Origin: Tubulanus polymorphus
Taxonomy: Eukaryota; Animalia; Nemertea
Direction: 5' to 3'
DNA length: 64,000 nt
Assembly (NCBI RefSeq): GCF_964204645.1
Contig: NC_134030.1
Span: forward strand, 9,451,222-9,515,221
Part shown: positions 1,557 through 55,421 of the stretch, in pieces
Layout: each line of letters begins with the position of its first letter
Numbering within the stretch: the stretch's first letter is position 1
Program-made: the position numbers and the translations under genes
Notes under the pieces: model-generated
Databases searched by the model: none
The model's input: only the letters and a program-made list of their open reading frames with translations
Told to the model about the DNA's origin: nothing

Positions 1557-4500
1557 ATGTGGAGACAATATTTGTGCGGTCTCCTTGCGTTAGCGGCTGC
1601 GTTGAATACGATACAAAGCGCTGAAGGTAGGCATCAATTAGATTTCAGGCTAATCCGATGATCATGAAATTTATTGCATGTATATTTCAAACAGCAGAAA
1701 GCACTTAGATACCGATTTATTTCAATATCCTGGTTGAAAAATTGACGGAACAATAGCGCCGGATGAATCGGCAGAGCATGGACGTAATAAACTTACATAC
1801 ATACTTTGAGGTATACCGAGGTACCTTGTTTTTTGAAACTATATACATATCTCTAGGAGGTGATTATTGTATATACATGTAGCATCTTGGTTGTCTCCTC
1901 AGGTGCTACAGTATATTAATGTTGATTTGATTCCAATCGATTCTTATTAAAATGAATAGTGTTTTTACGTAGAATCATGTTTCATTCTCGCGATTTGTCA
2001 CCAAAGACTGTTAGAATATGACATTATATTGAATACTGAATGTTTTGGATTCGGTTTAGACATCAACTGGTCGGTCATATTTTTTTCAGGGACATGTTTT
2101 GGTAGCAGTTGCACCGGTTGGTCGTGCCACTGCGTTTCCAATACCGAAGACGCAAATGCAAAAATCGTCTGTCCTTCTTCATCGGCCGGGCGTCTTAAAT
2201 GCCCGTCGTCGGCACCGCATTGCGAGAAAAGGGCCGATAGATACCGTAATTGGGAGTGGAAAGGACCAGGTTGTCAAATAGGTAAGTTACAATTACAAAT
2301 AGTCAGAGCAAATAGAGAGTGCGCGCTCAGAAATTCGCGCACCTGTCATTCATTTGTCAAACTCTCAAGTTCAGCGTCTATCGAAAACAAATTACATTTC
2401 GTACCGGTATATGGGTTAATTATCTACGAGATCATCGATAACGAGATCATGATAAGTATTTTGGTGAATAAGCTACACTTGATCTTTAAGCAGGGGCCAT
2501 TTTCTCAAAAGTTGGTTTCAAAAGAAAGTCCCTGAATAAATGCCATAAGATTGTCATTACGTCAGATGTCCACGGGATTAAACTTTAGTGCAACTGTATA
2601 GCCACCAGAAAACTTTCCTCTATGTTAATGGATGGATTGCATTCAACACCTAACAAACTCTATACGAATGTCATTGGCAAGATACAAAAATGTCGATGAT
2701 GTAAATACGTAATTTCCGTGTGCAAACGCGGCCAGTACTTATATTTGATGATTGACTCCAGTTACAGGACATAATCAAACATGTCTGAATGAAATGACGA
2801 GAAAAATATATGTAGTTGTCTATAAAAATATAAACTGCTGTGGCCCAATTGCAATTGTGGCCCAAAATAACAGTGTGTGTATTATGATTGGCCAAAAAAC
2901 ATAAGTATGTGTAATTCATATAGAAAAACTAAAATGATGTAATCAAAACCTACATAACCCCCGGATAAAGTTCGAAAAGTCGTTTCCTCCTTTTTTTATT
3001 TCTAATTTTTGATAAATGAATTCTTTTGGTTTCCATCTTAATTTGTACATTGTGGGTTTTGAGCATACAACCATTCTCCACGTCTGGCTGTGGCTATTCC
3101 ACTAATAAGGCTAAGAATATTTTCCTGGGAAAATCGTTTTGAAAAAACGCAGAAAAATGATTTTGAAAAATCCGTAAGGGAATAATTAAGTCACGCAAAA
3201 AAAATATTTTTTTGAAAGAATATTCTATTAATACAACGCAATTACGCAGTGATACAAGTCGAGTCTGCATTCTAAATGTCGAACAATATGTTTTTAACAA
3301 TTTCAGTTTATATCGACTTATATAGATTGCAATAACCAATATATTAGCATACTTCAATTCTACATTATTTCAGATCTTTCATAAAGTTTTTAATTTTTGC
3401 ATCCAATTTTCATCGGTACGTGACGCGTGTAGGTAACGTGGCTGAATCGAAGCGGGCAACAATGTCCTCGAATGGTGGTTATTACAATTCACAGAAACAC
3501 TGCCTTGATGGCAAAATATCGGGCAGCCAGTACTGCGAAACGCGTGAGCAAATCAATCCTTGGATCATCGTCGATCTCGGTTCTAAACACGTCGTACAAG
3601 CGGTGGATTTGTACTATTCGACCAGAAGTTCAAGCACTTCTTGTTACAATTCTCAAAGTAAGTTTTCAAGCAAATTATTTATGTATACAACCTAGAACAA
3701 AGCGACAGATACCTACGTGGGAATAGGATTCATTTTACGTTTGGCATCGGTTGTTCCTTATTGTTTCACAGTCAATACGATAAGACAACGGCGGAACCAT
3801 GACCGGCACGTGCTCCCGTCTCAATTTTCCCGTACCGTTTGGAAAATACAATGGCAATATTTTCAGGGCACTTTTCCCACCCGAAATTGATAAGACAGCG
3901 CAGTGCAAAATTTAGCTTATGTTCTCTTAAAGTGCCCCTCACGTGCCTAGAAATTCGATGAATATGCACTGAAATTCAAAAAATTGTCCAGACTTGGCCG
4001 CGAGGATACTTAACTTGCCCTTCATTTCGTGCTCCTGACAAGTCTGCCCCTCGATCCACCCATGTAGGATGACACCAGGCCCAAGTTATCTTCGCTTCTT
4101 ATCCACTCGAAGGAATCAAGAATCTAATTCATAAAGAATTATCGAAGTAGCCACTTTTGTAATTCGTACATGTACTTTATCGCATTACTAAAGTGGCACA
4201 ATGCATGTACTAGACAATTTAGAATGAAACGCTAGCTCTACCCAGTGCTAGACAGTTACCGGTTAGATTTGACACCAAACATACAATTTGTTCATTTCAA
4301 AATGTTTTGACTCCTGAGCCAGGTTTTAACTGTGAGATTCCTGATACGCGAAACGAGGTTGCTAGAACTTCAGAAAAAAACAAAAACGTCGAATTAAAAG
4401 AAAAATCCGTTTTGTCGTGTTAAAAAGTGAGTTTAACTTGTCTTGGCGAAAATATCAACCTAAATCTAACTTGAAAGTCGTTTACTTTGTGTGCATCTCA

Positions 4501-7500
4501 AGATTGCGACCTTTGGTTTCCCACAATTTCAAATATGAATAGCTCATTAGTCCAGTCAAAATAGGACGAAACGTATATTGGAAACATTTTTTTCAGGAAG
4601 GTTGAAGTGGCGTTTGTTGCAGAGCCGAGTCGGCAATGGTAACGATGTGCACAATCCTTTGTGCACGAATTTCACCGATGTCGGGTACGGCTGCGGTAAC
4701 CACGTGCTTAAACGATGCGACGAATCGTTGATAGGGCGGTATGTTTCCGTGCAAATGATGGGTCGTGAGAGATTAAAACTAACTGAGATTGCCGTCATCG
4801 GATTCAAGTATATGGGTACGATCGTTGCTTTTGATATCAAATACCACATACTAATTTAATTTTTCTTCTCCGTACGGCTCTATACCCATAACATCCAACC
4901 CAAGCGGCAGTAGCCCTTATATATTAAAACACACACGTTGGAAACCATCATTTATGGATCAGGGTATATCGATTTTCAGACCCGACTCAGTGCACGTATC
5001 CAGGCTCGTTCGGTTGTATGGCTGAAGCTCAGTGCAATCTGAAAGTCCCGAATAGAGTCGACTATTTGACCGGTTACTGTCATAATGGCTGCAACGCGAA
5101 CTACATCGGCAAATACTGCGATAAAGGTCGGTTCCACAGTTTTTTTTTTACAATAATACTTGAACTTTATTGTCAGTTAATAGACTTTTGACAAATTACA
5201 CACATATATCAAAACATTTATAAAGACGATAACAACAATTTACAGTCCGAAAAAAATATAATAATACCCGTCTTACAATTAATTCTTTAATTCATTGTTT
5301 TTAATTATTGTCTTTAATTTATAGTTTTTAATTGATTTGTTTGCGAAGATTTAACGTTGAAAAATGGGACTGAATTCCCAGTCCGATTTCAGATTGATCT
5401 TGGTTAATGAATGTTTAAATTATTTTTCGAAGTGACTGCAAAAACAAAATGAGCTCTTCAAACTGAACCGGCATCAACATCAACTTATCAATTATCGAAA
5501 CTAACTTATCATCTTGTCACAGCGGATACCGGCGTGCCGTTTGATATTTGCTGGTTTTATTTTTTCAGAATTCAAAACAAGATCAGTCCCGAGCGTTGTA
5601 CCCCAACTGCATAGCGCTGTCGTCACTGTATCGTACCCGTATGTCGCCGATACTATCGATTCGGGAAAGGGTCGAATACGTGTGGGATATCGCGTTCTTT
5701 ACAGGAAAGTCGGCGACGAAGACTGGATCGTCGCTGGCACTGATCCGCCGCCTAAACCGGGTGATAATCAATACGTTTTGACATCTCTGCGGAATAAAGT
5801 CGTAACGGGTCTCGCTGAAAACACGGTTTACGAATTCGTGTTGGCTTTGCGGAAAATCGAAGCCAATTTGAACTCGACGCTTTACGGCAGGACTAAACAG
5901 ATACACATGCTGTGTTACGGTAAGTGTTAATTCGTGGATTGGAAAGATATTCAGTACGCGGCAGTATTGCGGTAGGCTATGTCCCGAATAAGTACAGGGG
6001 CGGAGCTAGGAAAATCGGAAGGCAGGAATGACTAAGGATTTTTTTCTGATAAAGCAGGGCGTCATAGGCTAATAGCGGGTCCCACCCTCGGTGTTAGATA
6101 TTTTGAAAAGAAAAACATCCTAAAAAATGCTAATTTCGAGAACATGAGTGTCCATTCGCTGGTTTTAACGATCTTTGTCTTGATGAAAAGGACAACCTTA
6201 ATGGAAAGGCAGGGGTCCGGATTCCCTAGACAACCCCTAAAATCTTCCCCGGCAAGAACACAAGCTTTGCGGTCGTTTGCGGACGGCTCCGTTCAATAGA
6301 ATTGGTCAATTACGTCGTCGATTTTACTACCTGATCCTGAATGTCCACATCTTAACGGGAAATGATATTGTCTTGTAAAGGATAAGTTGAATATTTTACC
6401 TACACGAACACTGTTCATTATATACATGTATATACTGTTGGTAAAATCTTGATAGAGATAAAGTTATTTTCAGCACCCGCCAAAATCAACTAGCTGATTT
6501 TATTTTTCGAACGAAATGTCACGAGATCGTCGTGAGTGAAAACGTATTTCGATTTATTGTGTCTAGAACCGCTAGTTGGCCCTGACATCATCAAGGGTGT
6601 CCAACGAGATGCAGCTGAGCAGACGTTCAGCATCTTTGTAAATTACTACGTAAGTTAACAGTAATATTCAGAGTATTTCACCGATCAAATACTTTTTTTG
6701 TGATGAAATCATGAAATTTTGCGCGTTTATACGGTTTCTTGTTTGTATCGTTCCTCTTTACTATAGTGGCTTTCGGATGAGCAGACACGGTGCAACGGAC
6801 CGGGCACTATCTACAGGATATTCAAACTCACGAAGAACAAGTGGCAGAACATCGGACAAGGATCGTTGATTAAAAACGTGAAACCTTACACGAAAGTGCG
6901 CGTGAAAGTCGGAGTACAGAATAAAGGAAACAGAGGCTTCGTTTTCGGCAAGATTCGTGAATTCTTGACAGGATCCGCAGGTGCTTTCTTTTGATTCGTC
7001 AGCCTTTTTTGGGAGGATTTCTTTCAACGTGAACAAATATATTTCATATCTCTGAACATAGTTCCAAACCTATCCTGTAATGTGATTGTGGTCACCGCAT
7101 ATATTACGTTTCGTCGTTTTTTAGTCGTGAATTTGACAGCGAAAAACATAAGCTCCAGTAGTGTGAACGTAACGTGGACAACTCCAGAGCAGCTTCGACA
7201 TCTACGATTCAACTTTACGGGCCTTTACGTATTGAGGAGACCATTGGCGTGTCCGGTGTCGTATCAGTCGGAGCAGGGTATACTGTTCAGTCCATTCCCG
7301 ACGAAACTCCACGAATTACGTCTGATCGGCTTGAAAAGCCACGCCGAATACGATGTGACGATCAGCCCGATTCCTCTGGATGGATCTATGCAACGCGGCT
7401 CCGCTACATTTAACTTCACAACGATGCAGTCAGGTAAAATATGAGTGCATCATTTCGTATAAAACAAAGTCATTCGTGCTATAGTAGACATTCGTGCTCT

Positions 7501-9163
7501 TCTGTAATTACCAGCGATAAATTAGAAATTTCATTTAACTCCCGTTCGATCATGAGCGAATTTACATTGAATATATTATGCTTCGTTATGAACTTGCCAC
7601 GCGCAATGTTTTCATCTGACGTGTAGACCTTATCAGTTCACCGAGAACCATCATAAGATAAGATATGATTTTATTACACTCTATCCATATTGGTAGTGGT
7701 AAAAGGGAATTTACCAAAGATAATCTCATTTAGAAAATTCTTTCGAACTTGTTGAAATATCGCTATAGCGAACTCGGTGGTTCACGCAAGCAACGTGTGC
7801 TAAATTGCCGCGATCCAATTACTTTCAGGATTGGATGAATCTGCCAGTAAAGCTGCCCACCTCATTAAATTACAAATGCATGATCAAATTGATTTGTTTT
7901 TGATTTATATACAATGAAAAAAGAGAAAAAAGAGAAAAAAGCTATGCCATTAATCCGTGATAATCGTTTCGTACATCTAACCGTGAAAATCGTTTGGAGC
8001 CAGATATCTTTTCTGGGAGCTTACAACGCGTCTATCTATAGAATTTTGATATTTCAGCTCCTACAGCCAAACCCACCGCCCCGAGCGTTTCTCCACATAG
8101 AGTCAGCACGACTCACATCACGAATACAACTTGGTGCCGCGTCAACTTTTTCCACATTCCGTGCCAGTCGAGAAATGGAAACTTCACCGGTTTCCGCTAT
8201 AAACTCTACGAGAAGAACTCCGATGCGTTGGTTTGGGAAGAAGTGGTGATGGAGAGCGAACGCGTCTATATCAAAGACTTGAAACCGTTTACGGACTATT
8301 CGCTGAGCTACACCTGGACGAATGAAGCCGGCGAAAGTCCGCAATCCGACGCCACCGATTTCAAAACTGACGAAACAAGTACGTGTATTAGTCTTTTCTT
8401 CGGCTTGGATATGTTAATAGAACCTCCGAGAATCGACTACACGGCAATTTTCTAATAATAGTTTTTGCTAGTCGTTGCATGGTTTTCGATTTTTCATGTA
8501 CGAAGAACTGCTGGAAGTACAGATGAAAATCAACCCCGTCGACCGTAACGAGGACAATTTGGATTTCACAGCGGATTTCACGTTCGAGGAAAGCCGCGGA
8601 ATAGTTCTGAAATACGCCGTTGAGTGCGGAGAGACGACCGGTGACGGCGTCGAGCCGATAAGACCGACTAATTCGGATTGGGACATCGACGCATCTCCAG
8701 AGAATTTACCTTTCAAAGTTTACAATCTGAAGCCCGCTACGTGGTACGGGTGCTTGGTGAGTTTATTGGCATTTTTGCGCTGCGCTCTCGATATTTTCCT
8801 ACATATAACATATATCAAAGAGCCGTTACCTATATAAACAGGACTTACAGGTTATGAAAATTGCAATGTGCAATCAGTGTAGAAAGCTAGATCTATGTAT
8901 TTTATTCCATCATTTATAGAAATGATTAATATATGATATCCACAGTGTCTTAAGAGACATTTTCCCGAAAATATCGAACTAAAATGTTTCGGAAACGCAT
9001 GTTAAACTAAGGCCTAAATCCGCGTTGCGGTCATTACTGTTGGTTGCATTGAAACTGAATATTAACTAGATCTTGCACGTATCTATTTCAGGCGACCGCT
9101 TTGAGTAAGAAAGGCTGGGGACCGACTACCGCTTACGTCTACATATTGACAGCGTCGCGTTAA
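1557..9163 (+). CDS. Array copy 1: secreted EGF-like / F-type lectin (FTP) / EGF-like / 5xFN3 protein, 12 exons, ~817 aa
   Basis: Exons 1557-1626 (MWRQYLCGLLALAAALNTIQSAE, signal peptide), 2090-2281, 3433-3657, 4597-4815, 4980-5126, 5569-5919, 6567-6649, 6767-6980, 7125-7433, 8058-8378, 8506-8756, 9092-9163 (TAA). All introns are GT-AG with compatible phases; total 2454 nt. FTP-like motifs: GNVA..K.A.MSS, hDG, NPWIIVDLG, NPLC, GRYVSVQ, L.L.EI.VIG. FN3 motifs: V.W, GLxxxTxYxF/V, LKPFTDY..S..NEAGES. No hydrophobic C-terminus. Confidence 0.88.
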
Positions 9164-9380: not shown

Positions 9381-10451
9381 CTAACGCCCACGGGAAAACA
9401 TATCTTTCAGTTGGCGTTGAAAGCGACGTCTCGAGGCGCAATAAATGCAGAAATTGGCGGACGCGACTGTGGATTTTAGCACGTGTTGTATAGCATTGAA
9501 ATATTGATGAATATTTCCCTTTCCTAAACTACCCGTGACTGTTAGAATTAGATTTCTTACACTGGCTCTGAGACTGAATGACTTTTTGATCAAAAAGAAA
9601 CACAAAATGAGAACTAACGTCAGGGTTAGACTACGGTCGTTACTAGTTTGACTATTCGTAGACAAAGCTTTTCTCGCTGCTCCTGCGGTCCTTAGCGTGA
9701 TTATCAGACGAACGGTTATGGCGGTAACGATTGCGGTCGGAATCAACGTAAAGATCGGAGAACGAACGAATGTAGAATAGTATCTGAGATAAATGTTCTT
9801 AGCGAATGGCGTGAACCTTTGGATCCACCTTTCATGCCCAGTACAAAGATTGTTCGAACGACGAGTTCTAAACTTAAAGAAATTCGTAATCTGATCGCAG
9901 ATCGAAATCACTACAGCCAACAAGACGTAGACGTAACTTTTCTTTATAGAGACAATTCTGACCGCTCTTAGGGGCCAACATACAACTATATATCTGTCTA
10001 TGGCGATCAGAAATGTTATTAGATCACTGATACTCGTAAACAGTAATCTGAAATTTTTAGTATACGAATACATACGCTTCGTAACGTGGTTTAAACTAGC
10101 AGTCATGTCTAGTATCAATGTGTGACTGTAGAGCTTGTACTGGAAGTCAAATACAACGTATGATAGACAAATACCAACGTCTGCAATGGCCAAAGATCTC
10201 ATGTAGAATATGCTGGTGTTGACGGGATGTTCTTTGCTGAGCGTCATGAATGACAGTAAATTTGCACAAACGCCAAATACGGCTACGCTAAAAATAACGT
10301 AATTCATCACTTGTAGGTACATGTTGACGTGTAGCGGTTTGTAGTCGGAATGGTGGTTGTATTTGCACCGAGACGATGTTTTCGGTTCGTCTTCGATGAA
10401 ATCCGACATACTGACGTTAGAAATGATAGTAAGGTTTTTGAATACGGCCAT
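9381..10451 (-). CDS. Intronless rhodopsin-class (family A) GPCR, FMRFamide/peptide-receptor-like, 356 aa
   Basis: Seven hydrophobic segments. TM1 FGVCANLL, TM2 YMRSLAIAD, TM3 IAIDRYIVVCWPL (DRY), TM5 LIP, TM7 SANFCIYC followed by RRRF..L helix 8. Confidence 0.9.
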   Translation of the reverse strand: MAVFKNLTIISNVSMSDFIEDEPKTSSRCKYNHHSDYKPLHVNMYLQVMNYVIFSVAVFGVCANLLSFMTLSKEHPVNTSIFYMRSLAIADVGICLSYVVFDFQYKLYSHTLILDMTASLNHVTKRMYSYTKNFRLLFTSISDLITFLIAIDRYIVVCWPLRAVRIVSIKKSYVYVLLAVVISICDQITNFFKFRTRRSNNLCTGHERWIQRFTPFAKNIYLRYYSTFVRSPIFTLIPTAIVTAITVRLIITLRTAGAARKALSTNSQTSNDRSLTLTLVLILCFFLIKKSFSLRASVRNLILTVTGSLGKGNIHQYFNAIQHVLKSTVASANFCIYCASRRRFQRQLKDMFSRGR

Positions 10452-12942: not shown

Positions 12943-15900
12943 ATGGTGCGTCTAACATACGCGTTAAGTTTCCTTGTTGCAGTTTACGCGTTAGATTCAT
13001 TTATGTTGCCTTCAGAGGGTAAGTAATGACTATTCTAAATCTATTTTTTCCAAAAGTTTGAAATTTAACATCATAACAATAACAATGACAAATATGTGAT
13101 TTCATACGGACACTAATGAATTGTGCAACATTTATAGTAGTAAAACGAAGATCTGTATTCAATTGTCTCTAGATTTTAGAAATGGTGTCTAAAAATGAAA
13201 ACGATCATTTTTATTAAGATACGGTGATAGATCTTGGTGTTTTAGGTACTTGTTTCGGGCAGAGTTGCACAGGCTGGTCGTGCCATTGCACTAAATCTCG
13301 ATATGGCAGGCGCTTGCAGAAATTCTGTCCATTGAAGTCCGCAGATGAAGGCTCTCTTACGTGTCCACCATCGGCACCGTACTGCGAACCGATTTATAAG
13401 CGTCAGCTGGACCGGCAATGGAAAGGACCCGGCTGTCAGATCGGTAATGCAAAAAATAGAACTGAAAACATTAAGAGTAATATGAAAATAGTTGATTCTC
13501 ATTTTGTTGAGATGTATGTAAGTTCCCCCTCTCACAAGAGGGTTATTTTCTATCACAAAATTGAACTTGTAGACAAAGTGGTGGTGCACAAATTACCTTT
13601 GGCAAAAATGTTCGGATAGTACATCTAACTGTATGCCACTCTCTACATCCAAACACAATAGACCTATGGTATTTAGTAAATATGAAATGATTTGATGCAT
13701 TTGTCCCAGAACTGATTTAGGCTGTCGATTCATCCGAATAAAAACGCATTATGAATACCCCAGTTGTGGCAGTTGTGGCCAGATTGACCCAAAATATATT
13801 AACATGGCTAATAACAGTGCCAATTACCAAAAGCGAATTTATAGCCGTCTGATTCTTTTTTAGGAATCATGCCTGGGTTTTCCTAATCGTAATGATAGTA
13901 ATGATAATAATGGTCATTTATATAGCGCAGATATCCTAACAAGAGTCAGAATTGTACTGGCTAATGGTTTTGATTTGGGTTTCAAACATTTTCGTATTTT
14001 CTCAAGTGAGCGCATATCGTTAAAACATAACGACTACCGAATATGAATCAAGATATAAACATAAAATATAAACATAATATAAAAGCATAATTTTCTTCGA
14101 ACGAATTGATTTTCAAATTTGGTTTCACAGCATATTGCATTAATTCATTGCGATAATTTCAATGTCGTTCAGGTAACATAGCTGAATCGAAGGAAGTTAG
14201 AATGTCTTCCGGGCGGAGCCATGACGATGCAAGTCAATGCGTCGATGGCACTACATCTGATTATTGTGAAACGCTCAAAGAACGAAATCCATGGCTGATA
14301 GTCGATCTCGGTTCTAGATACGTGGTACACGAGGTCATCGTATGGTATCGGACGTATACGGCGTACACTGGGTATTGCTCAATTAAAAAGAGTAAGCATC
14401 AACCGAAAGTCGGGGTTATATTTCCGCATTGGAGACTCTCCAGTCCATCGATTCTTACAGTATTCTTTGACAGGTTTAAGAACCCACTTATTTTTTTCAG
14501 GAAAGCTGAGGTGGAGAGTCGTACAGAGTCGAGTCGGTGACAGCAACAACCTGACTAATCCATTATGCGCCAATTACACAGATGTAAAATACGAGTGCGG
14601 TAACCATGTGTCTAAACGTTGCAACGAGGCGTTGGTAGGGCGGTATGTTTCCGTGCAAGTAATCGATTTTCAAAGATTAAAACTCACCGAAGTGCAAGTT
14701 ATCGGGTTTAAGTATATAGGTAACTGAGATCACCGCGTAAATCACAGCAAAACTGCTACAAAACATAAATATTACTAAATTACAAATATCATATAATCAT
14801 CAAATATGGTTTCCTTAAGACGTCTGTTCGTATAGATCAATTCAAATAATATTCAATGTCCGCATTTTCAGACCCGACTCAGTGCACGTATCCAGGCTCG
14901 TTCGGCTGTATGGCTGAAGCTCAGTGCAATCTCAATGTCCCCAATAGAGTCGACTATTTGACCGGGTACTGTCATAATGGTTGTAATGCGAATTATATCG
15001 GCCAATACTGCGATAAAGGTTGGTCTTGTAATTACAAGAATTCGTATTTTAGGTGAAAATAGCTGTGCACCGGGTTAACTACAACAAGCAGTTTCGTTCC
15101 TTGACATCGATCTTTGAATCCCTACATTGTTCAAAAAATGAATCCACCAGTAAAACAAATTAAATTATCGGTATATTTTACAGAATTCAAATTGACGTAT
15201 ACAATGAAATTGGTAAGCCAGATTCATAGCGTCAACGTCACGATATCGAATCCACGAGTACCGAATGGCAATATGGATTCGGGTAAAGGTTCTATACGAG
15301 TGGGATATCACATCCTTTACAGAAAAGTCGGCGATAAAGACTGGATCGTCGGAGCTACTGAACCACCAGCAAAACCGGGTGCCAGTATATACGTCATAGC
15401 ATCGAAGCGAGATATAGTTATTTCGGGTCTTACTGCAAACACCCAGTATGAATTCACGGCCACGGCCTGGAAAATCGACGCTGATTTGAGCTCGACCTTG
15501 ACTGAAGATACTCGGAAATCATATGTGTACACATTGTGCCACGGTAATTCCCATTTTACTATCAACGCGTATTTTGGAAAAATCAACGCACTATCGACTC
15601 GTTTTTTTATGATTCATATAGAGCCACTAGTTGGTCCGGATGTTGCCAGCTTGAAACAACAGCGAGTTGCTGATTCACCGATGTATAATGTTTACGTGAG
15701 ACACGAGGTAAATACAAATCACAATTTCAAAATAAAGCTGCAAAGCAGCGATAACGGGTTTCTGCCTTGCTAGATTAAATGTCGTTTCTACGAAGGTTGC
15801 AAAATATTTCACTGAAATCAGTTCATTACGTACCGCTATTTTGAAGGAGCACCACCTAGGGGTCAGCATATATCATGGATACGTTGACCCACATGGCTAC

Positions 15901-18900: not shown

Positions 18901-19073
18901 ATGCTTTTGTAATGTTTCATGTAATTGATACTTACCTTAAAGTTTAAACATCTATGCTGTATACAGCATCTACTGTATTCAAAAAATATCTATATTTCTT
19001 CTAGGGAAGTGCTTTGAGTAAGAAAGGCTGGGGTCCATCCACTGCTTACGTCTACGTCTTGACAGATGGTTGA
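12943..19073 (+). CDS. Array copy 2: secreted EGF-like/FTP/EGF-like/5xFN3 protein, 12 exons, ~824 aa
   Basis: Exons 12943-13018 (MVRLTYALSFLVAVYALDSFMLPSE), 13246-13443, 14173-14391, 14501-14719, 14872-15018, 15184-15543, 15622-15707, 17253-17472, 17628-17936, 18013-18333, 18572-18822, 19005-19073 (TGA). Total 2475 nt. Same intron positions and phases as copy 1. Confidence 0.88.
15731..17113. mobile_element. ~1.38-kb non-autonomous insertion in intron 7 of copy 2, Helentron/HINE-like
   Basis: Absent from the paralogous introns (copy 4 empty site reads cacaattcaaaat-gagacatc). AATAA at both junctions. gggtttctg near both ends. An (aat)n tract then a 3' stem-loop gggtttctg..cagaattcc. Confidence 0.55.
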
Positions 19074-26700: not shown

Positions 26701-28629
26701 GTCGGAGATCTAAGCGCGCCATTGGCTTTCTTCATCATTTTTTTCAGATCATCAAAGGAGATCAGCGACGATGCGAGGCACCGGGCACGATCTACACAAT
26801 TTTCATACAATCAACGAAAAATGATGCGTGGACGAATATCGTCCATTATTACAAAATTTCCGGCCTGGAGCCTTTGACGAAATATCGAGTGAAAATCGGT
26901 ATCAAGAATAAAGGAAATGTTAACTTTGTCTTCGGCAAAATTCGTGAATTCATGACAGGATCGGCAGGTATTTCTTTTACATTACAGTATGTTAGTACTT
27001 GATATAGCTTATAACTAAGGCGTCATCATTCTTCTACGCTGATGCAGTTACCCATTTAACGGCGACAAATACATCACTCGGTCTGAACGCTTCCTGGAAG
27101 ACCCCCGTTCAACTTCGACATCTACAATTCAACTTCACTGGAGAGTATCGAATGATAAGCCGGTTAGCGTGCCCGAAACAGAGGTCGAGTGAGAAAACAC
27201 GAGGATGCCCATTCCCAACCGATATCAACGAATTAGAACTAGTCGAACTGCAGAGCTACGCCTATTACGAGGTGATAATTACTCCTGTTTCGCTTAACGA
27301 CAAATCCAAAATGGAACGAGAATCAGTTGCATTAAATGTTACTACAAAACAGTCAGGTAATTGAGTTCACGTTCGGTTGGAAATCAACACATTTTACATC
27401 ATGATGTCACACGACTACATTACTTTTTCTAGCTCCGACTGGTACCCCTAGACCAGCCGAGATACGACCACAATTCGTGAGCTTATCGACAATCAAGGAG
27501 ACAACTTTGGCACATGTCATTTTTTACGAAATATCGTGCGAATCGAGAAATGGAAACTTCATCGGTTTCCACTTCAAACTATACGAAAAAAACTCCGGTG
27601 AATTAATACGGGAAAATGTCACGACGAAAAATGATTATTATATTGAACATTTGGAGCCGTTTACGACCTATTCGCTAAGCTACACCTGGACGAACGAAGC
27701 CGGTGAAAGTCCGCAATCCGATGCCACCGAATTCAAAACAGACGAAACTAGTAGGTCACATATATTTCATCAAGATACAATATATCATAAATTTACCAAC
27801 TTTTCTATTTAGTGAAAAGTAGTTTTCATGAGCAATATATGAGGTAATTCCCTAAGAAAATATCTGATGCTATCTGAAATAGATTTTTAGCAGAAAATGT
27901 ATTGCTCGAGGTCAATACCCGAGATAGGGGAAAGAATCGAAATTCATCATGGCGTTTATGTAAGTCGGACGGTAGACTAATATTTTCGAATAAAGGTTTT
28001 GAATTCTAAATCCCATTTTGACCAGTTCTGCTCGATTTCTGCTCGCACTAACAAAATGATACTAACTGACAAAATGATACTATGTACTTGTGTACTATTT
28101 TCAGCATTATTGGAAGTACAGATGAAAATAAACCCTGTTGATCGTAATGAACACAATTTGGACTTCACCGTCGATTTTACGTTCGAGAAAATCCGCGGAG
28201 AAGTTCTAAACTATGCCTTACAGTGCGGAGAGACGACCGGTGATGGCGTCAAACCGAAAAGACCCAGTCGTTCGTATTGGAGTATCGATAAAGATCCGAA
28301 GAATCTACCTTTCAAAGTTTACAATTTGAAGGCCGCGACGTGGTACGGATGTAGGGTATGTCAGCTTTCTAGAACTCAAAACAAAGGTTTATATAAGCAC
28401 GTTGCAGATGTAATAGGTCATGTATGTTGTTAAAATGCTTCGCTGTTATTTGATTCAACACTCACTCCGATCACTACCATAATGATTTACTCGCACATAA
28501 ACATATTTATTCTAGGGAAGTGCTTTGAGTAAGAAAGGATGGGGACCGTCAACGTCTTACGTCTACGTCTTGACAAAAGATCGAATTTCATCCGGAGCCA
28601 CGCGTGGACAATGGGAGAGCAGCAAATAG
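23782..28629 (+). CDS. Array copy 3: secreted EGF-like/FTP/EGF-like/5xFN3 protein, 12 exons, ~839 aa (15-aa C-terminal extension)
   Basis: Exons 23782-23860, 24040-24237, 25045-25260, 25377-25595, 25761-25907, 26062-26421, 26512-26600, 26748-26967, 27048-27356, 27433-27750, 28105-28355, 28516-28629 (TAG). Total 2520 nt. CGA at 28582 where copies 2, 4 and 5 have TGA. Confidence 0.87.
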
Positions 28630-28997: not shown

Positions 28998-31900
28998 ATG
29001 TGGGGACAGTATCTGTGCGGTCTCCTTGCGTTAGCGGCTGCGCTCAATGCAGTACAACACGCTGAAGGTAGGCCTATGTATCGGTTAGATTTCAGTCTAT
29101 TGTAGTGAATAACATCGATTATTTCAAGTACTTTCATCCAATTTTTTTGTGGGATTGATCAAGCATTCTAACCTCGATTGAGTGCAGGAACCTATTTTCA
29201 TTGTCAACTTGCTGGTCTAACCAGAATTGGCCATATCCGAGGCCATTCAATAGATCTCTAACCGAAGAAGCCCAATTAATTACACGGTGATCGCGTATGA
29301 TATCATTTATCATATGCGTATGATAGCATTTGATTGTACATCAGCTTAGTTAGTTTCTCAGGTTTCATTTTAATTATATTAAGCCAGTATTTCACAATTA
29401 ACATTCTTTGCTGGATACATATGGGATATTGATCAATTTCACTAAATACAAAATTATCAGGTGTTGAGTTTTTAACTCCCAGGAGGTATTTATAAAATTT
29501 GAGAGGGATTCTCTCCAGTTTTCTTTGTTCCTTGAAACCCCATATTTGTTAGCCATAAGTTAAAACAGGTACTATAAGGCTGTTAAAGAATTTGATGGCT
29601 AGCCTGGGTGTAACTCTTGGATACTGAAGAAGGTATTTTATAAAATTATAGTATGCTGATACTCCCCGAGACGCCAGACTGTTGATAGTTACATTATGTC
29701 TTCCATTGAAATTGAATTCCATACCTAAGTATGTAAAACAATTAACACTTTCTATTAACTTTTTCATCGATCTTCCAGACAAAGTTTCTTACATTGACTG
29801 CTTTTCTAAAGACGACAATTTTCGTTTTTCCATAATTAATTCCGATATGCATTACATGACTGTAATTAGAAATATTATCAAGGGCACATTGAAGTCCCTC
29901 TGGAGTCTCGGCGAGTATAACCGTATCATCAGCATATAACAGTAATAAGAGTTCGAATGTACCTAAGTAGATTTCATCATAATCAGTGCTTTTAACATGT
30001 TCTTCCATATCATTGATAAAAAGATTAAAAAGAAGAGGGGATAAACACTCTCCCTGTCTTACTCCAATGTTACATACAAAATACTCAGTGAAATTGTTAT
30101 ACTGCTTTACGCACGATTTCGTCGTTCTATACATGGAGTGTATTATTCTAAGGATTTTACCAGATATACCATTACTATGGAGTTGGTTCATCAAAATTGA
30201 CTGATCAACCAAGTCAAAAGCTTTAAAAAAATCTAGGAAAGCAGCATAGACTTTGTTACCCTTACTAATAAAAGGATTTATAACTGAATTTAGGACAAAT
30301 ATTTGATATATGGTGCTGTATGAAGGACTAAAACCTGCTTGCGATTCTGTGAGAACTGAAAAAGCCTCACACCAGGAAGTTAATCTTGTATTTAATATGG
30401 TTGAGAACAACTTTCCAAAAACAGACAGTATAGTAATGCCTCTAAAGTTATTCGCATTAGAAGTGGGCCCCTTCTTATGAACTGGTACTATGTATCCCAT
30501 ACTCCAACTTTCAGGATATATGCCACTCTCAAAAATCAAATTAAATAGAATAGTTTAGAGGTTTTTGAAATGATTAAATAAGCTGTTTGAATCAGGTAGT
30601 TTACATTCAGGCGTAGAACCTTTAAATTTTGTCCACAGATCTCTATGATTATTGTTGTCATTAAATCATTGGTACCGCCGACCAGTTAAATAAGTCGACG
30701 GTTCTCGAATCGTCGGCATCGTCGACCAATAAAGACGGTTGCCTAGGTCAAACTACAAAATAACACCTTTTTCAAAAAATTAGTGAAATTACTTGACGCA
30801 CTATAATATGACCGTATATTGGACTTGACCCAGTGCCACATGATTCCTGCAGATTTGATTCCATTTGATTCTTTGTGAATTGTGTTGATTCATACATATG
30901 ATCTTATCTAGACGATTAAGACGGACAGCTAAAATGTGATCTATATTGATTGTTTTTAATTCGGTTTATGAATGCATCGGTTGGTCATATTTTAGGGACC
31001 TGTTTCGGAAGCAGTTGCCCCGGTTGGTCGTGCCATTGCGTTTCGGGTACTGCTTCCCGAAATGCGAAAAAGGTGTGCCCTTCTTCAACGGCCGGACGTC
31101 TTAAATGCCCGGCGTCGGCACCGTATTGCGAGAAGAGGGCAAATAGTTACCGACATTGGGAATGGAAAGGACCCGGCTGTCAAATAGGTAAGTAGAGTTC
31201 CACTTAACCAGGGGCCAGTTTCTCAAGCGCTGGTTCCAAAAGAGAACCAATGAATACATACCAAGGTTGTCATTATGCCAGATATCCACGGGATAAACCA
31301 TCTTTTGAGCAACTGGCTATACAGAAAGCCTTCATATTAGATGACGATTGCATTCCAACGAATGCCTTATTTTGCTATTGGCAGATAGTAGAATAGCGAA
31401 TAAAGAATGATTTAAATGCATTATTTCCGGGGGTAACTACGACCAGTACTATAAGAGTATTTGATGATGGACGCGGTTACTGCACATAAATATCTGTTAT
31501 TGTTAATAGAAATATAAACTAGCAACATTTATTTGCTGTCTGCCGTAGTAATAATGTGTATAATGAGTTGGCCAATTATGATACGTGAAACGTAAACATT
31601 CTAGATGAATACTGAATGTTGGGAGGTTTCTTGCGGAAAAGATCTAGAATATTTTATTCGACGACTCATTTTAGAATCTTGGAAAAAGGCTGAACAATCG
31701 ACGAGAAAAGAGAAACGTTGCACCAAATGTGACTTTAGAAAGAAATATGATGGAGAAAGATCATTTCTAAAAATGTTTTCGCCTTAAATCCACGAGGGAA
31801 TGATAAGGTCACGCCAAAAAATACTTTTTTTTGGAAAAAAATACTTTCGACCATCGAATGAAGCGAAATTGTAAAGAAACAATGCGGCGACGAAAGTCAA

Positions 31901-34900
31901 GGTTACATCCTAAACGTCGAATATATTTTTAATAAGATTCAGTACATACCGACTCATCGATTGCATAATAGGCAAACAGACTTTCATTTTTTCGTAAAAG
32001 GTTTTGATTTTTGTATTCTCTTTTCGTCGTTGCGTAACGTAGGTAACGTGGCTGAATCGAAGCAGGCGAGAATGTCCTCAAGTGGGGGTACTTACAATTC
32101 ACAGATATACTGCTTTGATGGCGCAGTATCAAGCAGTAGGTACTGCGAAACGCGTAAGCAAACCAATCCTTGGATCATCGTCGATCTTGGCGCTAAATAC
32201 GTCGTGCAAGCGGTGGATTTGTACTATTCGACAAGAAGTTCAAGCGCCTATTGTTACAGTTCTCAAAGTAAGTTTTCAGGTGAATAAGTAGTGCATACTA
32301 AGAATAAAGCAACAAATTGGAATGAAATTGGTTTGATTGACATTTGGCATTGAGCCAGTTGCAATGGGATCGGCCGTTCCTTACTGATTCGCAATCGAGA
32401 CGTAAAGGATGACATTAGGATAGGTTATGTTTTCTTCTTATTCACTCATAACTCTGACGCTTGCTGGACCCCGTGCCGCAGTTGTCGGTTAGGTTACTGT
32501 TAAATTATTGATGTGTAAATGAGGGCAATTCCAAAACGCAAAGGAAGAAAATCATTGAATTTTCCAAAAAAATAATTTACGCAAAAAGGGTAAGCTTGCT
32601 TTGGTGATGCCTATATATCAATGTCGTACATATTACTTGTTTAGGTTTTCGACATGGATTAGGTTTCCCTAATTTCGAATATGAATTGCTTATGGTGAAA
32701 CCTCTTTTTCAGGGAAGCTGAAGTGGCGTTTGTTGCAGAGCCGAGTCGGTGATGGTAACCATTACCATAATCCATTATGCACGAATTTCACCGATGTCGG
32801 GTACGGCTGCGGTAACCACGTGTTAAAACAATGCGACGAATCGTTGATAGGGCGGTATGTTTCCGTGCAATTGATGGGTTATAAAAGATTAAGACTTACA
32901 GAGATTGTGGTCATCGGATTCAAGTATATAGGTATATGTTCGTTGTCTTCATCGTCGAAATGCCATTCCGTGTATTTTGTGGTTTGTATTATTGCGCTGT
33001 GTGATGGCTCTGTACTCATAACATCCCAATAGTCGAAGTGTGAGCATGTATCTTTTACGCGTTAGCGGCAATAGGTCTCTAGATTGCAGAATACGTGATA
33101 AAAAACAACGATTCAGTGTCAGGATACATCTCACGTCTTTTTCAGATCCGAATGAGTGCACGTATCCAGGCTCGTACGGTTGCATGGTGGAAGCTCAGTG
33201 CAATGTAAAAGTCCCCAATAGAGTCGACTATTCGACCGGTTACTGTCATAATGGCTGTAATGCGAACTATATCGGCAAATACTGTGAAAAAGGTTAGCGT
33301 TGTCTCATCCTGCCTGCAAGGATTTGGAATTTTCTCCTAGATCTGGAACTCTAGGTGCAAATGACAGTGCACCCGGTTTACTATATGAGCAGGTTTTGTT
33401 ACCTCCTTAATATCGACGCCTCGAACTTTGGATCCCTTCTTTATTGAATGAACATCGTTTACCTCACACCAAAATAACTCAATCTATTCATCTCTCATCG
33501 TTATACTTTTACAGAATTCAAATTGACGTATACTATGAAATTGGTTAGCCAGCTCCATAGCGTCATCGTCAAAATAACAAACCCACGATTACCGAATGGT
33601 AAAACAGATTCAGGAAAGGGTTCTATACGTGTGGGATATCGCGTCCTTTACAGAAAAGTCGGCGATAAAGACTGGATCGTCGGAGGTACTGAACCACCAG
33701 CAAAACCGAGAGGCAGTAGATACGTCATGGCTTCGAGGCGAGATATAGTTATTTCAGGTCTTGCTGAAAACACCTATTACGAATTCGCCGCGAAGGCCTG
33801 GAAAATCGACGCTAATCTAAATTCGACGTTGGACGCTCGGAAATCATACGCATTTACGTTATGTTACGGTAATTCCCTCTATACTGTTAATGCATATTTC
33901 GTTTGGCATATAAAAATTCAACGCACTATATTCGTTTTTATGAATAGAGCCACTAGTTGGTCCGGATGTCACCAGCTTGCGACAACAGCGAGATGTCGAC
34001 TCGTCGTTGTATAACGTTTACGTAGAATACGTGGTAAATAGAAATCACAATTCAAAATGAGACATCTAGTTTGAGAACCTATAAACCTTAAACGGATTCG
34101 TTGATGGTGGTAATCTGCAAAGATAACACGTTTCTTTACGTATCCGAGCATATCCACTAAGCAAACCCATTGTCCTGGAATCTGCAACGAAAAGAATAAC
34201 CCGGAAGTTATCTGCGATTGGCTGCGCAATGCCACAAATCAGAGCACGTATACATGCAGCAGCACTCACTGACAAGGGGGCGCTAGCTGACGACCTGGTT
34301 GTCGCAGCGTAAATACTGTTATGTTCCGTTCCGATGCTAAACCTGCTTATATTATATATGCGAGTCAGAGCTAACGGTTGTGATTTACTTCCTTCGACGT
34401 GTCTTTTCAGACGATCAAAGCAGATCAGCGACGTTGCAACGCACCGGGCACGATTTACAGACTTTTTATTCGATCAACGACAAATGAAACGTGGACGAAT
34501 GTCGGCCAGAATTACAAAATTTCCGGCCTGGAGCCTTTGACGAAATATCGACTGAAAATCGGTATCAAGAATAAAGGAAATGCTTACTTCATCTTCGGCA
34601 AAATTCACGAATTCTTGACCGGATCAGCAGGTGTTGTTTTTTTTTAAATATTAGGTTCAGTTGATTATCAAAATCGATCAATTCTATGGTAGAAAGTTGC
34701 TTTTTGTAACACGGAACATTTTCAATTTTCATTATTTATATTAGATAATACGATTTTTTTATTTTCTCTCGACTCGCCTTAACGGCGCTGTTGCAGTTAC
34801 CCACTTGACGGCGACAAATACACCATTCGGTCTGAACGTTACCTGGAAGACTCCCGTTCAACTTCGACATCTACAGTTCAACTTTACTGGGAAATATCGG

Positions 34901-36271
34901 TTAATAAACAGGGCAGCGTGTCCGAAACAGAGGTCGAGGGAAGAAACTCAAGGATGTCCATTCCCAACCGATATCAACGAATTAGAACTAGTAGAACTGA
35001 GGAGCTACGCCTATTACGAGGTCACAATTACTCCTGTTTCGCTGAACGACAAATCTAAAGTGGAACGAGAATCAGTTGCATTAAATGTAACCACAGAACA
35101 GTCAGGTAACTGAGTTCACGTTTGGTCAAAATCGGCACATTTTACATCAAAATGTAACACGACTATTTTCCAGCTCCGACTGGTACTCCTAGACCACCCG
35201 TGGTTTGGCCACAAGATGTGGGCTTATCGACGATCAAGGAGACAACTTGGGTACAGATACGTTTCAACGAAATCTCGTGCGATTTGAAAAATGGAAACTT
35301 CATCGGTTTCCACTACAAACTCTACGAGAAAAACTCCGGTGAATTAGTAGACGAAAATGTGACAGTGCAGAGTTCACGTTATTACATTGAACATTTGAAG
35401 CCGTTTACGACATATTTGCTGAGCTACACCTGGACGAACGAAGCCGGTGAAAGTCCGCAATCTAATAGCACCGAATTCAAAACAGACGAAACTAGTAGGT
35501 CACATATATTTCATCGACACAATATTGATTATCATTTTTGCTTAACGCGCATTATGTTTTCCCATTCAATAGCATGTTATTTACATAAGAATCGAGTTCC
35601 TTGTTGATAGGAAAATGTCTGAGGCTATCAAAAAATGTTTTGGCAGGGAATGTCATGCATAAGATTCACCCCGGACATAGAGGAAACATCTATCGCATCA
35701 AATAGAAATTCTGAGATTAAAATTTAATTTCGATCAGATCTACTCAATCTCTATAGACCTCACAGCTTATATGATATAATTTTTACTATTTTCAGCTTTA
35801 TTGGAAGTAAAGATGAAAATAAACCCCGTTGATCGTAATGAGGACAATTTGGACTTCACCGTCGATTTTACGCTCAACCAAATCCGCGGAGAAGTTCTAA
35901 ACTATGCCTTACAGTGCGGAGAGACGACCGGTGACGGCGTCAAACCGAAAAGACCCAGTCGTTCATATTGGAAAATCGATAAAGATCCGAAGAATCTACC
36001 TTTCAAAGTTTACAATTTGAAGCCCGCGACGTGGTACGGATGTAGGGTAAGTCAGCATTGTAGCACCCGAAACCTAGGTATATATAAGTACGTTTGGCTG
36101 GGAGATGTAATAGGTCAGATATGTTGTTGAAATGCTTCACTATTGTTTCATTCAACGCTCACTCCGGTCAGATTTACTCAACCACGTATTCATTTCTTCT
36201 AGGGAAGTGCTTTGAGTAAGAAAGGCTGGGGTCCATCCACTGCTTACATCTACGTCTTGACCGATGATTGA
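28998..36271 (+). CDS. Array copy 4: secreted EGF-like/FTP/EGF-like/5xFN3 protein, 12 exons, ~820 aa
   Basis: Exons 28998-29067 (MWGQYLCGLLALAAALNAVQHAE), 30996-31187, 32043-32267, 32713-32931, 33146-33292, 33515-33868, 33948-34033, 34411-34630, 34797-35105, 35174-35494, 35796-36046, 36203-36271 (TGA). Total 2463 nt. Confidence 0.87.
29150..30650 (-). mobile_element. Degraded non-LTR retrotransposon reverse-transcriptase fragment (RTE/RTEX-like), antisense in intron 1 of copy 4
   Basis: PVHKKG...NFRGITILSVFGKLF, QAGF, AFLDFFKAFD, GVRQGECLSPLLF, LYADD, KTK, FTYLG. Frameshift near 29780 and an in-frame stop at 29549-29551. Degenerate coding continues (IWGF..LLGVKNSTP..KYWL..WASSVRDLL). Boundaries are approximate and the clade call is tentative. 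Confidence 0.9.
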
Positions 36272-36851: not shown

Positions 36852-39800
36852 ATGTGGGTAGAATATCTGTGCGGTCTCCTTGCGGTTGCGGCTGCGCTTA
36901 ATACATTACAACACGCTGAAGGTAGGCATCAGTTAGATTTCAGTTTATGTATGGTAGTAAATAATATTGAATATTAGTAGTTTGATACCGATTTTTTTAG
37001 GGGAATGATAGCAATGATGCATCGATAAACTTACTATGATGTGTAAAGGCGTTGAATGTTTTGAATTCGGTTAATAAATTGATTCGTTGGTCATATTACA
37101 GGGACATGTTTCGGTAGCAGTTGCCCTGGTTGGTCGTGCCATTGCGTTTCCGATGACCGGAATGCAAAAATCGTCTGTCCTTCTTCATCAGCCGGACGTC
37201 TTAAATGCCCGTCGTCAGCACCGCACTGCGAGAAGAGGATCGATAGTTACAAAAACTGGGAATGGAAAGGACCTGGCTGTCAAATAGGCAAGTACAATAA
37301 AGAAGTTTCCAGTTTCTAGGCGCCATTTTGTGGCGGTCCCTCGAGGTCCCCATTGTTGCGATAATTTGCGCTCATTTTTAAAACATAAGTTTTTATTGAA
37401 TATCATATAGCTCTGCAGTCCCTTGCTTGATTAACTTTATTAATACACCATTTTGAAGGAATTGAAATGCATGTATTTTCCGGTGATTATTGGATTTTTT
37501 GAACGCAACAATTGAGAGCAGTGACGATTTGAAACCAAGGACCGCATTTTTAAACCGCGCTTCGAAAAATTGCGATTTTTATCAATTTTGAAATATCTTA
37601 GTGGTTATTAAAGCTATATTTCCCATTAGCGGAATAAAAGATATACAGTATGATAGACATCTGGTATGAATTTGGTGCTTTTGGAAGAATTTGAACCAAA
37701 AACCTCAAAATATTCCCTTAGACTATACAGTCTAAATGTCGAATATGTTTTTAATATTTCCGTACATGTCGACAACGATAACACGTTAGCAGACTTTCAA
37801 TCTCAATTTGTTCTAATCTTTCATATAGAAGACAGTTCTTTTTTAACATTTCATTTTTATCGGTACGTGACGTGTGTAGGTAACGTGGCCGAATCGAAGC
37901 AGGCGAGAATGTCCTCTTATAGTTCACAGAGATACTGCTTTGATGGCGCTGTCTCAGGAAGGTACTGCGAAACTCGCAGGGAACACAATCCTTGGATTAT
38001 CGTTGATCTTGGTGCTAAACACGTAGTGCAGGCGGTGGATTTGTACTATTCGACAAGATATTCAAATGGCTATTGTTCCAGTTATAGAAGTAAGTTTTCA
38101 CGTGAATTAGCGAATTATTGATACAGCGAAGCAATTGAATTAATTTGAAATTTGGCATTGACCCACAGTGTTGCACAGTGGTCAGTTGTTGTGGTTCCTA
38201 TCGTAGTAGTCCCTATTGTTTCAAAGTCGAGGCGTAGGATGACACCAGGCTAGCTGGATGGACCCAGTGCCACACAGTTCTCAGCTTCAGGTTTGACTCG
38301 TAGCTTGGAGTTACTCAAAGATCCTAGAGACAACATTTGTTCATTTCCACCAATGTTTTAACGCTTGAGTCAAATTCTACCCATTAAATTCTTGACGCGC
38401 AAATGAGAGCGCTAGATAGCTAAGATGCCTCAACGAGAAAAAAACGTCGGATTTTCTAAAGAGAAATTCATTAAACATCCTTTTGCATCAATGAGGGAAC
38501 TCTGTTTTGGCGGGGTGTGAAAATGTCAATGCTAATACGAGTTAATGACCTTTCGTTTCATGTGTAGCTCATATTTGAAAACTCTTTTTCAGGAGGGCTC
38601 AAGTGGAGTTTGTTACAGAGCCGAGTCGGTGATGGCAACGATTTACATAATCCAATATGCACGAATTTCACCGATGTCGTGTACGGGTGCGGTAACCACG
38701 TGTTTAAACAATGCGACGAATCGTTGATAGGGCGGTTTGTTTCCGTGCAAATAATGGCTTATGAGAGATTAAAACTAGCTGAGATTGTGGTAATCGGATT
38801 CAAGTATATAGGTACATTCGTTGCTTTCGATATTGTTATATTGAATTCTATAACATATTGATATATGCTTTCGGATTCAGGTATATAGGTACATTCGTTG
38901 CTTTCGATATTGTTATATTGAATTCTATAACATATTGATATATGCTTTCAATTATGTATCTATAAAAATTCGTTCTTCATTGTTATAATTTCCATGTAGA
39001 TAAAGAAAATTAGCGTTAATCATTAATCGTGTAGCCTGGGATTTGTATTATGTTCTCTACCCATAAAATACAAAAAATATTACGATGAAAACCATCATTC
39101 GGGATCACGATATATCAATTTTTCAGATCCGAATGAGTGTACGTATCCTGGTTCGATCGGTTGTATGACTGAAGCTCAGTGCAATATAAACGTCCCCAAT
39201 AGAGTCGATTATTTGACCGGTTACTGTCATGGCGGCTGCAACGCGAACTATATCGGCAAATACTGTGACAAAGGTCAGTCGTGTGTTACCCTGTGTGCAA
39301 GGATTCGAACTTCTTTGCTGGAGCTGGAAGTCCAGATACAAATTAATGGCTGTCTGTGTAGCGGCATAGCGCTCATGGCCAAGGACCGTGAGGGGATGGT
39401 CGACGATAGAAATCTCTTGAAATTTTGAGAAGAATTTGGTGGATTTTTACGACGTTGAACAGTGAATTCCGTGAAATAAATCATAAATAATCCACCAAAT
39501 CAATACCGCAATCACAGATCATTTCGCATGAGAAAATATTACTTCTTATTCGCCTGAATTGAAAAAATTCACTTAGGATTTTTTGGGGTAGACATTTTAA
39601 GGGAGCTCCAGATTTAGGAGGAGGGGGTCTGGACGCCCTTGGACCCCCTAAATCCGCGACCGGATTTTACTTTAGCAAGCAGCGTTTCATACCTTAGCAT
39701 CGACGCCATGAACTTCGAAATTCCTACAATTGAATGAACATCGTTAAATTAACCAAGATATCCGAACCTACCAATTTTTTGGTATATTTCAGAATTCAGA

Positions 39801-55398: not shown

Positions 55399-55421
55399 TA
55401 TATAAAATGTTCGATTGAATT

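Follow-up and report, generated by a model that had tools for sequence, protein, structure and literature searches.

Five tandem genes for secreted F-type lectin proteins

A 64,000-nucleotide stretch of the genome of the nemertean Tubulanus polymorphus (contig NC_134030.1, positions 9,451,222 to 9,515,221; hereafter, the window) carries five tandem copies of a gene encoding an F-type lectin domain (FTLD), all on the plus strand, along with one remnant, as seen by comparing the window with itself. Every copy encodes, in the same order, a signal peptide, a Cys-rich module, the FTLD (exons 3 and 4), an EGF module and FN3 repeats closed by a stop codon, and neither the signal-peptide exon nor the terminal exon is shared between copies. 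Coordinates of the copies and of their main exons are collected in Table 1.

When the exon 3 translations of all five copies were combined into a profile and compared with 1.8 billion representative proteins, the search led to P0006, an uncharacterised T. polymorphus protein that is the spliced product of copy 1. Its lectin-like domain, split over exons 3 and 4, follows a signal peptide and an eight-Cys module and precedes an EGF-like module and FN3 repeats. No membrane anchor is found in P0006, which ends 23 residues into the last exon without a hydrophobic segment. A word search in the full-length range returned three more relatives (P0151, P0152 and P0153), all from T. polymorphus, and no orthologue in other species. 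From these, P0151 is the database model for copy 2, N-terminally truncated in that it begins at the Met of exon 3; P0153 represents the tail of a copy 4 duplicate; and P0152 is a paralogue of approximately 51% identity located 5.6 Mb away on the same contig.

For copy 3 no database model was found, and its 3′-end deviates from the rest: within window positions 28516-28629, CGA replaces the TGA stop of the other copies, so that the reading frame continues for 15 more residues at the C-terminal end. Intron 1 of copy 4 harbors a reverse-transcriptase-like open reading frame (ORF) of 270 aa on the minus strand (29745-30554), which stretches the intron to ~1.9 kb. In exon 6 of copy 5, an in-frame TAG (39951-39953) stands where all other copies, and copy 5's own duplicate c5′, have TGG (Trp); copy 5 is probably a null allele or a pseudogene of recent origin. 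The remnant retains only the last FN3 exon (22198-22380) and a terminal exon (~22480-22560), and adjoins a plus-strand G-protein-coupled receptor (GPCR) gene.

Copies 4 and 5 are present a second time ~77 kb downstream, at 99.75% identity for L002 (C6:9558983-9562204, C6 being the contig of the window) and 99.1% for L005 (C6:9564819-9568019); the c5′ locus with TGG is L029 (C6:9567300-9572300). We call these duplicates c4′ and c5′, and they stem either from a recent segmental duplication or from a second haplotype that was retained.

The possibility that the five heads are alternative first-exon cassettes spliced to a shared tail, in a protocadherin-like manner, was considered and ruled out because each copy has its own stop-bearing last exon, GPCR genes intervene between the lectin genes and no phosphatase exon lies downstream. 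A search for the phosphatase domain (PF00102) returned no match anywhere on contig C6.

Exon structure and transcription

In all five copies, exon 3 lies between AG and GTAAGT and has phase 1-1. From these boundaries we reproduced the exon 3 lengths reported in an earlier note on this DNA, namely 225, 219, 216, 225 and 210 nt for copies 1 to 5, and the ten peptides quoted there for two exon 3 loops (A and B) were all located on the plus strand at the positions it gives. The same note had contrasted the whole-codon variation of exon 3 with a set of invariant exons. The invariant set stands, as exons 4, 5, 9 and 11 (in its numbering) are constant at 219, 147, 309 and 251 nt in all five copies, but exon 3 is not alone in varying: whole-codon changes also occur in exons 2, 6, 7, 8 and 10, with lengths of 192/198/198/192/186 nt for exon 2, 351/360/360/354/360 nt for exon 6, and an exon 10 that is one codon short in copy 3. 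Splice sites of exons 3 and 4 are canonical and their frames open in every copy.

Contigs from public runs of two studies, compared with window positions 1500-7499, confirm this structure for copy 1. Two of them, X2 (2024) and X5 (2014, a different sample), present GT..AG joints at every boundary of exons 1-9, including both exon 3 joints (2281|3433 and 3657|4597), with zero mismatches to copy 1 in either. X5 measures 2540 nt and stops shortly past the last exon, a length as expected for the whole messenger RNA of a secreted protein. In X4, from a third run, the exon 3 sequence of copy 2 is joined to exons 4 and 5, and the loose end matches window position 14256. No library kind is recorded for these runs, and we take the contigs to contain RNA because they are spliced. 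Copy 1 is thus transcribed and spliced as modelled, and copy 2 is very probably transcribed as well.

An F-type lectin fold

In the eel agglutinin fold, five loops on the top face, named after the complementarity-determining regions (CDR1-5), ring the pocket, with the termini at the bottom (PMC5712786). The copy 1 domain (P0006:88-236), modelled with AlphaFold2 on an alignment of 75 domains (A4), reached a predicted local distance difference test score (pLDDT) of 89 and a predicted template modelling (TM) score (pTM) of 0.86. Low confidence is restricted to loop B and one further loop, and CDR1 and CDR2 are modelled at pLDDT >90. The top eight Foldseek matches of this model in the PDB (3cqo, 1k12, 3lei, 3lek, 3le0, 2j22, 4gwi and 2j1r) are all F-type lectin domains, with TM scores of 0.70-0.79 and E-values from 8e-11 to 4e-9.

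Sequence comparisons point the same way. A phmmer search of the PDB with the whole P0006 domain finds striped bass FBP32 (E=6e-11) and the eel agglutinin AAA (E=0.009); profiles of the separate exons match the lectin domain of lectinolysin (Sm-hPAF), FBP32 and SpX for exon 3, and FBP32 and eel agglutinin for exon 4. In Pfam, only sub-threshold scores were obtained, 26.2 bits for F5_F8_type_C_2 and 25.3 bits for F5_F8_type_C. The domain of copy 1 is therefore an F-type lectin domain by both fold and sequence, which agrees with its initial assignment from the window alone.

A remodelled fucose pocket

The pocket was examined in the alignment of 75 domains, of which four rows belong to the family described here (copies 1, 2 and 5, and P0152) and 71 to other domains. 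Canonical fucose binding follows the motif His...Arg-x-Asp-x4-Arg/Lys, which is not present in any copy. In the His52 column, Glu occupies all four family rows, and His is found in 44 of the 71 others; the replacement is read as C-E-T in all five window copies, as the earlier note had it, and also in a further C6 paralogue (L008). The Arg79 column holds Arg in 70 of the 71 other domains, Ser in copies 1 and 5, Arg in copy 2 and Lys in P0152. Copies 3 (W-Y-S-T-Y) and 4 (Y-Y-S-T-R), which are outside the alignment, have Ser at this position too. With Arg, Tyr or Ser in the Asp81 column, the Arg-x-Asp element is absent throughout, just as first described, copy 2 alone keeping its Arg in the form R-T-Y.

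The third residue of the triad is retained. Every copy has Lys or Arg in the Arg86 column, as the K/R of the LKW/LRW that opens exon 4, and this basic residue was missed by the earlier note because it sits across the intron. Between the Arg79 and Arg86 positions there are 15-16 residues in the window copies versus 6 in canonical domains, an insertion of 8-10 residues. The enlarged loop recognised earlier is hence real for the window copies, and it is absent from P0152, so the enlargement is specific to the window cluster.

CDR2, on the other hand, is shortened and flanked by a family-specific Cys pair. In the family, a Cys precedes the Asp-Gly of the calcium motif and a second Cys stands directly before the Glu, at positions where most domains have Ala and Thr/Ser, respectively; the second is common to canonical paralogues of the same genome (C-H-T versus C-E-T). 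Asp-Gly itself is invariant, in the form C-[LVF]-D-G-[KTA], and the last strand retains its Glu; relative to the cation-binding motif (small hydrophobic)2-Asp-Gly-x, the first position is Cys and not a small hydrophobic residue.

Such a constellation of residues suggests that canonical fucose binding has been lost. Tyr-Cys-Glu-Thr is invariant while the neighbouring codons differ synonymously, which argues that the Glu is maintained and is not a product of decay. All copies agree in the Glu, in the Cys pair and in a basic residue (Lys/Arg) at the Arg86 position, and P0152 has retained these too.

Loss of the His is not peculiar to this family: of the motif-matched domains in the 150 nearest database relatives, ~40% lack it, and four unrelated proteins have Glu in its place. 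Within the same genome, His is replaced by Ala in three copies on contig C55 (C55:50880-64603; L009, L011 and L012) and by Gln in a copy on contig C10 (C10:9909115; L010). Since these belong to other lectin-head subfamilies, the canonical pocket was lost more than once.

Secreted relatives of lectin-headed receptor phosphatases

With exon 3 of copy 4 as the query, 28 related exons were found in the six-frame translated assembly. Those on contig C12 keep C-H-T and R-x-D and belong to genes that have Cys-rich, FTLD, EGF and FN3 exons in common with the window genes, with tyrosine-phosphatase exons 5-6 kb downstream of the lectin exons. Both sets of genes are alike in exon structure, in the order of their modules and in the Cys right before the His/Glu position. 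They differ in that the C12 genes have C-H-T, R-x-D and phosphatase exons, whereas the window genes have C-E-T, no Arg-x-Asp and an enlarged CDR4, and stop after the last FN3 without a membrane or phosphatase part. The window family is a secreted, triad-less, tail-less branch of the FTLD-EGF-FN3 receptor-phosphatase superfamily of this genome. The N-terminal eight-Cys module (P0006 residues 24-87) is also common to the C12 receptor paralogues, and the database lists PF28033 for it.

Variation among copies concentrates in the loops around the pocket

Different parts of the genes group the copies differently. Exons 2-4 separate copies 1, 4 and 5 from copies 2 and 3, which we refer to as the two head lineages, and exons 6-11 separate copy 1 from copies 2, 3, 4 and 5; exon 5 of copy 1 is nearest to copies 2 and 3. 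Because the head and tail groupings conflict, head and tail lineages must have undergone exchange at least once, something to be expected where tandem copies are subject to unequal crossing-over or gene conversion.

Loops were assigned to faces of the domain by alignment to eel agglutinin together with the published topology, and not from model coordinates. Within lineages, differences per site amount to 0.44 in CDR1, 0.36 in CDR2, 0.38 in CDR4 and 0.36 in the beta8-beta9 top loop, versus 0.15 in strands and core and 0.14 in bottom loops, such that the top-face loops are ~2.5 times more variable than core or bottom loops (permutation p<5e-5). By this assignment, the variable residues appear to be concentrated in these four loops and not scattered over the domain.

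Composition sets the loops apart as well. Tyr and Ser together make up 32-53% of the three exon 3 loops versus 8-10% of the remainder of the domain, in both head lineages, in agreement with the Tyr/Ser richness that the earlier note had pointed out. Microsatellite expansion was rejected as the source of these loops, as exon 3 of copies 1 and 2 gave no hit with Tandem Repeats Finder.

Weak purifying selection on the loops

Pairwise Nei-Gojobori estimates of the nonsynonymous to synonymous rate ratio (omega) within lineages range from 0.27 to 0.57 for the loops and from 0.12 to 0.36 for the scaffold, and Fisher tests of loop versus scaffold are not significant. Nonsynonymous divergence is 2.5-4 times higher in loops than in scaffold, and synonymous divergence is also raised. 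Under a GY94 codon model fitted by maximum likelihood to the five copies on a fixed tree, omega is 0.43 for the exon 3 loops (below 1, p=0.007) and 0.23 for the exon 3 scaffold (below 1, p=6e-8). In exon 4, the top loops (13 codons) give 1.6, not different from 1 (p=0.48), and the remaining codons 0.32.

An omega below 1 in the exon 3 loops means that the test for positive selection fails, and so does pure decay; the ratio above 1 looked for in the earlier note did not materialise in these loops. The average signal in the loops is one of weak purifying selection, and positive selection was not detectable. No allelic variation was seen, the 2014 transcript contig being identical to copy 1 over exons 1-9, and exon 3 shows no differences between c4 and c4′ or between c5 and c5′, pairs whose flanking DNA differs by 0.25% and 0.9%, respectively.

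Comparison with known F-type lectins and related folds

Eel agglutinin AAA (1K12) and striped bass FBP32 (3CQO), the best structural and sequence matches in the PDB, have the same jelly-roll as the domain described here. Shared elements are the N-V-A...S-S start, the Asp-Gly of the calcium motif, the N-P-W-x-x-V-D-L and G-R-Y-V strands, and variable loops at the CDR1, CDR2 and CDR4 positions. In contrast, the window copies have Glu for His52, mostly Ser for Arg79, Arg or Tyr for Asp81, a CDR4 of 15-16 residues versus 6 and a shorter CDR2. They also lack the vicinal Cys-Cys of CDR4; the Cys50-Cys146 disulfide was presumably replaced by the Cys pair flanking CDR2, and the FTLD is placed in a mosaic of Cys-rich, EGF and FN3 modules.

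Loss of the triad and variable loops both have published precedents, in oyster bindin and eel lectins. In eel isoforms, variation falls mainly in CDR1 and CDR2, and half of the modelled oyster bindin isoforms are without the triad (PMC5712786). Bindin repeats have eight positively selected sites around the pocket and are shuffled by recombination (PMC5712786). The sperm bindin of Crassostrea gigas thus resembles the window genes in its differences around the pocket, its triad-less isoforms and the recombination of its lectin units. It differs in being positively selected at eight pocket sites, whereas the window loops of exon 3 have omega <1, and in varying among repeats and alleles of a single gamete-recognition gene, whereas the variation described here lies among tandem genes for secreted FTLD-EGF-FN3 proteins.

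An FTLD deviating from the motif is also known from Drosophila CG9095 (PMC5712786). In CG9095/Furrowed and in the discoidin C2 domains of coagulation factors V and VIII, the basic triad is replaced on the same or an analogous fold, and the top loops serve a non-fucose or unidentified ligand (PMC5712786). Their replacements are not those of the window copies, being aliphatic in CG9095 and forming a hydrophobic pocket in FVa-C2, and neither system presents a tandem series of paralogues with Tyr/Ser-rich loops. We found no literature on nemertean F-type lectins, and the review PMC5712786 makes no mention of an FTLD-EGF-FN3 architecture.

A probable reading: tolerant binding loops on a rebuilt pocket

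Taken together, we consider it somewhat probable that these genes encode soluble FTLD proteins with a non-canonical pocket and binding loops that are tolerant but still constrained. The domain would retain the F-type jelly-roll and the Asp-Gly of the calcium motif around a rebuilt fucose pocket. Copies would have diverged in the loops ringing the pocket through substitutions, in-frame indels and exchange of whole heads, with the Tyr/Ser richness staying in place. Their products may act as soluble recognition proteins that are no longer canonical fucose binders, the loop face probably serving another ligand, glycan or protein, and binding properties may differ between paralogues. The variety of the loops looks like ordinary divergence of tolerant, still functional binding loops, and not like the repertoire of an arms race.

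Several points weigh against this interpretation. Synonymous divergence is raised in the loops, which may reflect uncertain alignment around indels. The exon 4 top loops reach an omega of 1.6, at p=0.48 over their 13 codons, and with five to seven young sequences and head lineages that are synonymously saturated, positive selection at individual sites is possible. Clustering of the loops on one face is read from the eel agglutinin topology and not from measured distances. Loss of fucose binding is deduced from residues, and a Glu together with a basic residue could bind a sugar hydroxyl. Finally, copy 5 carries a nonsense mutation and another copy is a remnant, so some members of the array are decaying.

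The earlier note favoured a CDR-like repertoire, in which diversifying selection drove each paralogue to a different specificity as in oyster bindin. Variation concentrated in the top-face loops would suit it, as would the fact that every indel in the variable loops is in frame, a Tyr/Ser composition typical of binding paratopes, tandem amplification with heads exchanged between copies, and the ratio in the exon 4 top loops. We nevertheless judge such a repertoire unlikely, given that the exon 3 loop ratio is below 1 by maximum likelihood and in all pairwise estimates, that loops and scaffold do not differ significantly, and that the value of 1.6 comes from those few codons only. Neither copy 1 in two samples nor exon 3 of the duplicated copies presents allelic differences, and the family is small, with 5+2 copies.

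Equally to be weighed is relaxed constraint: the lectin site would have died with the loss of His52 and Arg79, leaving the FTLD as a structural head on an EGF-FN3 stalk whose loops drift. Against this, the loop ratio is significantly below 1; the Glu, the Cys pair and the basic residue at the Arg86 position are invariant even in the ~51% identical P0152; the Tyr/Ser bias is kept in both head lineages despite their different sequences; and CDR1 and CDR2 are modelled with high confidence. We thus find relaxed constraint doubtful, even with two of the three triad residues gone, loops evolving ~3 times faster than the scaffold at synonymous and nonsynonymous sites alike, low model confidence for loop B, and a premature stop and a remnant in the array.

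A more specific proposal, which we offer as speculation of low probability, is that the FTLD turned into a binder of protein or of a non-fucose glycan, with paratope-like Tyr/Ser loops and exchange of head cassettes yielding a small soluble repertoire beside the lectin-phosphatase receptors, for instance as opsonins or decoys. It is very improbable that the variation is an artefact of misassembly, mis-called exons or misaligned paralogues: the pair of copies 4 and 5 is present twice at 99.1-99.75% identity and could be an uncollapsed haplotype, and the database models of copies 2, 5 and c4′ are truncated, but spliced contigs of two studies reproduce the exon boundaries and match copy 1 without a single mismatch, splice sites are canonical and exon 3 and 4 frames open in all copies, and exon 3 of copy 2 is found in an RNA-like contig.

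Returning to the constrained-loop interpretation, the array as it stands adds a lineage-specific, expressed and triad-less subfamily to the phenomenon described in eel and oyster, with a loop variability that is explainable without positive selection. If non-fucose binding were true, it would be a natural case of the F-type lectin scaffold re-purposed through its loops, in Nemertea, and the lectin-headed receptor phosphatases of this genome would have in the family a soluble counterpart, the two forming a pair of sensor and secreted binder.

Feature coordinates and neighbouring genes

Table 1. Lectin gene copies of the window and their main exons and loops (positions in the window)
Feature	Position	Strand	Details
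Copy 1	1557..9163	+	LOC141907144; protein P0006 (817 aa, 12 coding exons), which equals the window exons exactly
Copy 1 exon 2	2090-2281	+	P0006 residues 24-87, eight-Cys module
Copy 1 exon 3	3433..3657	+	225 nt, phase 1-1; N-terminal FTLD half
Copy 1 loop A	3465-3542	+	In exon 3; Glu codon GAA at 3537-3539
Copy 1 loop B	3612-3656	+	In exon 3
Copy 1 exon 4	4597..4815	+	219 nt; C-terminal FTLD half; conserved R-L-K-W start, its Lys in the Arg86 column
Copy 1 short exon (E-P-L-V-G-P...)	6567-6649	+	Supported by P0006 and spliced contigs
Copy 2	12943..19073	+	LOC141907719; exons 1 and 2 intact in the genome
Copy 2 exon 3	14173..14391	+	219 nt; sole copy with Arg in the Arg79 column (W-Y-R-T-Y)
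Copy 2 exon 4	14501..14719	+	219 nt
Copy 3	23782..28629	+	All exons open
Copy 3 exon 3	25045..25260	+	216 nt
Copy 3 exon 4	25377..25595	+	219 nt
Copy 4	28998..36271	+	All exons open
Copy 4 exon 3	32043..32267	+	225 nt
Copy 4 exon 4	32713..32931	+	219 nt
Copy 5	36852..42429	+	Database model P0011 is a 233-aa fragment
Copy 5 exon 3	37880..38089	+	210 nt, the shortest; without four codons in CDR1 and one in CDR2
Copy 5 exon 4	38593..38811	+	219 nt

Two intronless genes of rhodopsin-type GPCRs are located between the lectin genes, at 9384-10517 on the minus strand and at 19955-20971 on the plus strand. The plus-strand ORF matches 7tm_1 (E=1.5e-13), and a GPCR-like fragment is found upstream of copy 2 (12145-12318). 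Just downstream of the array, on the minus strand, there are exons of an F-box/leucine-rich-repeat (FBXL-like) gene at 43900-45850, a call made by eye from the translation. Farther along, the window contains a long CAG/GCA microsatellite (55393-55749) and proline-rich low-complexity repeats in two inverted blocks (57270-57716 and 60722-61078).

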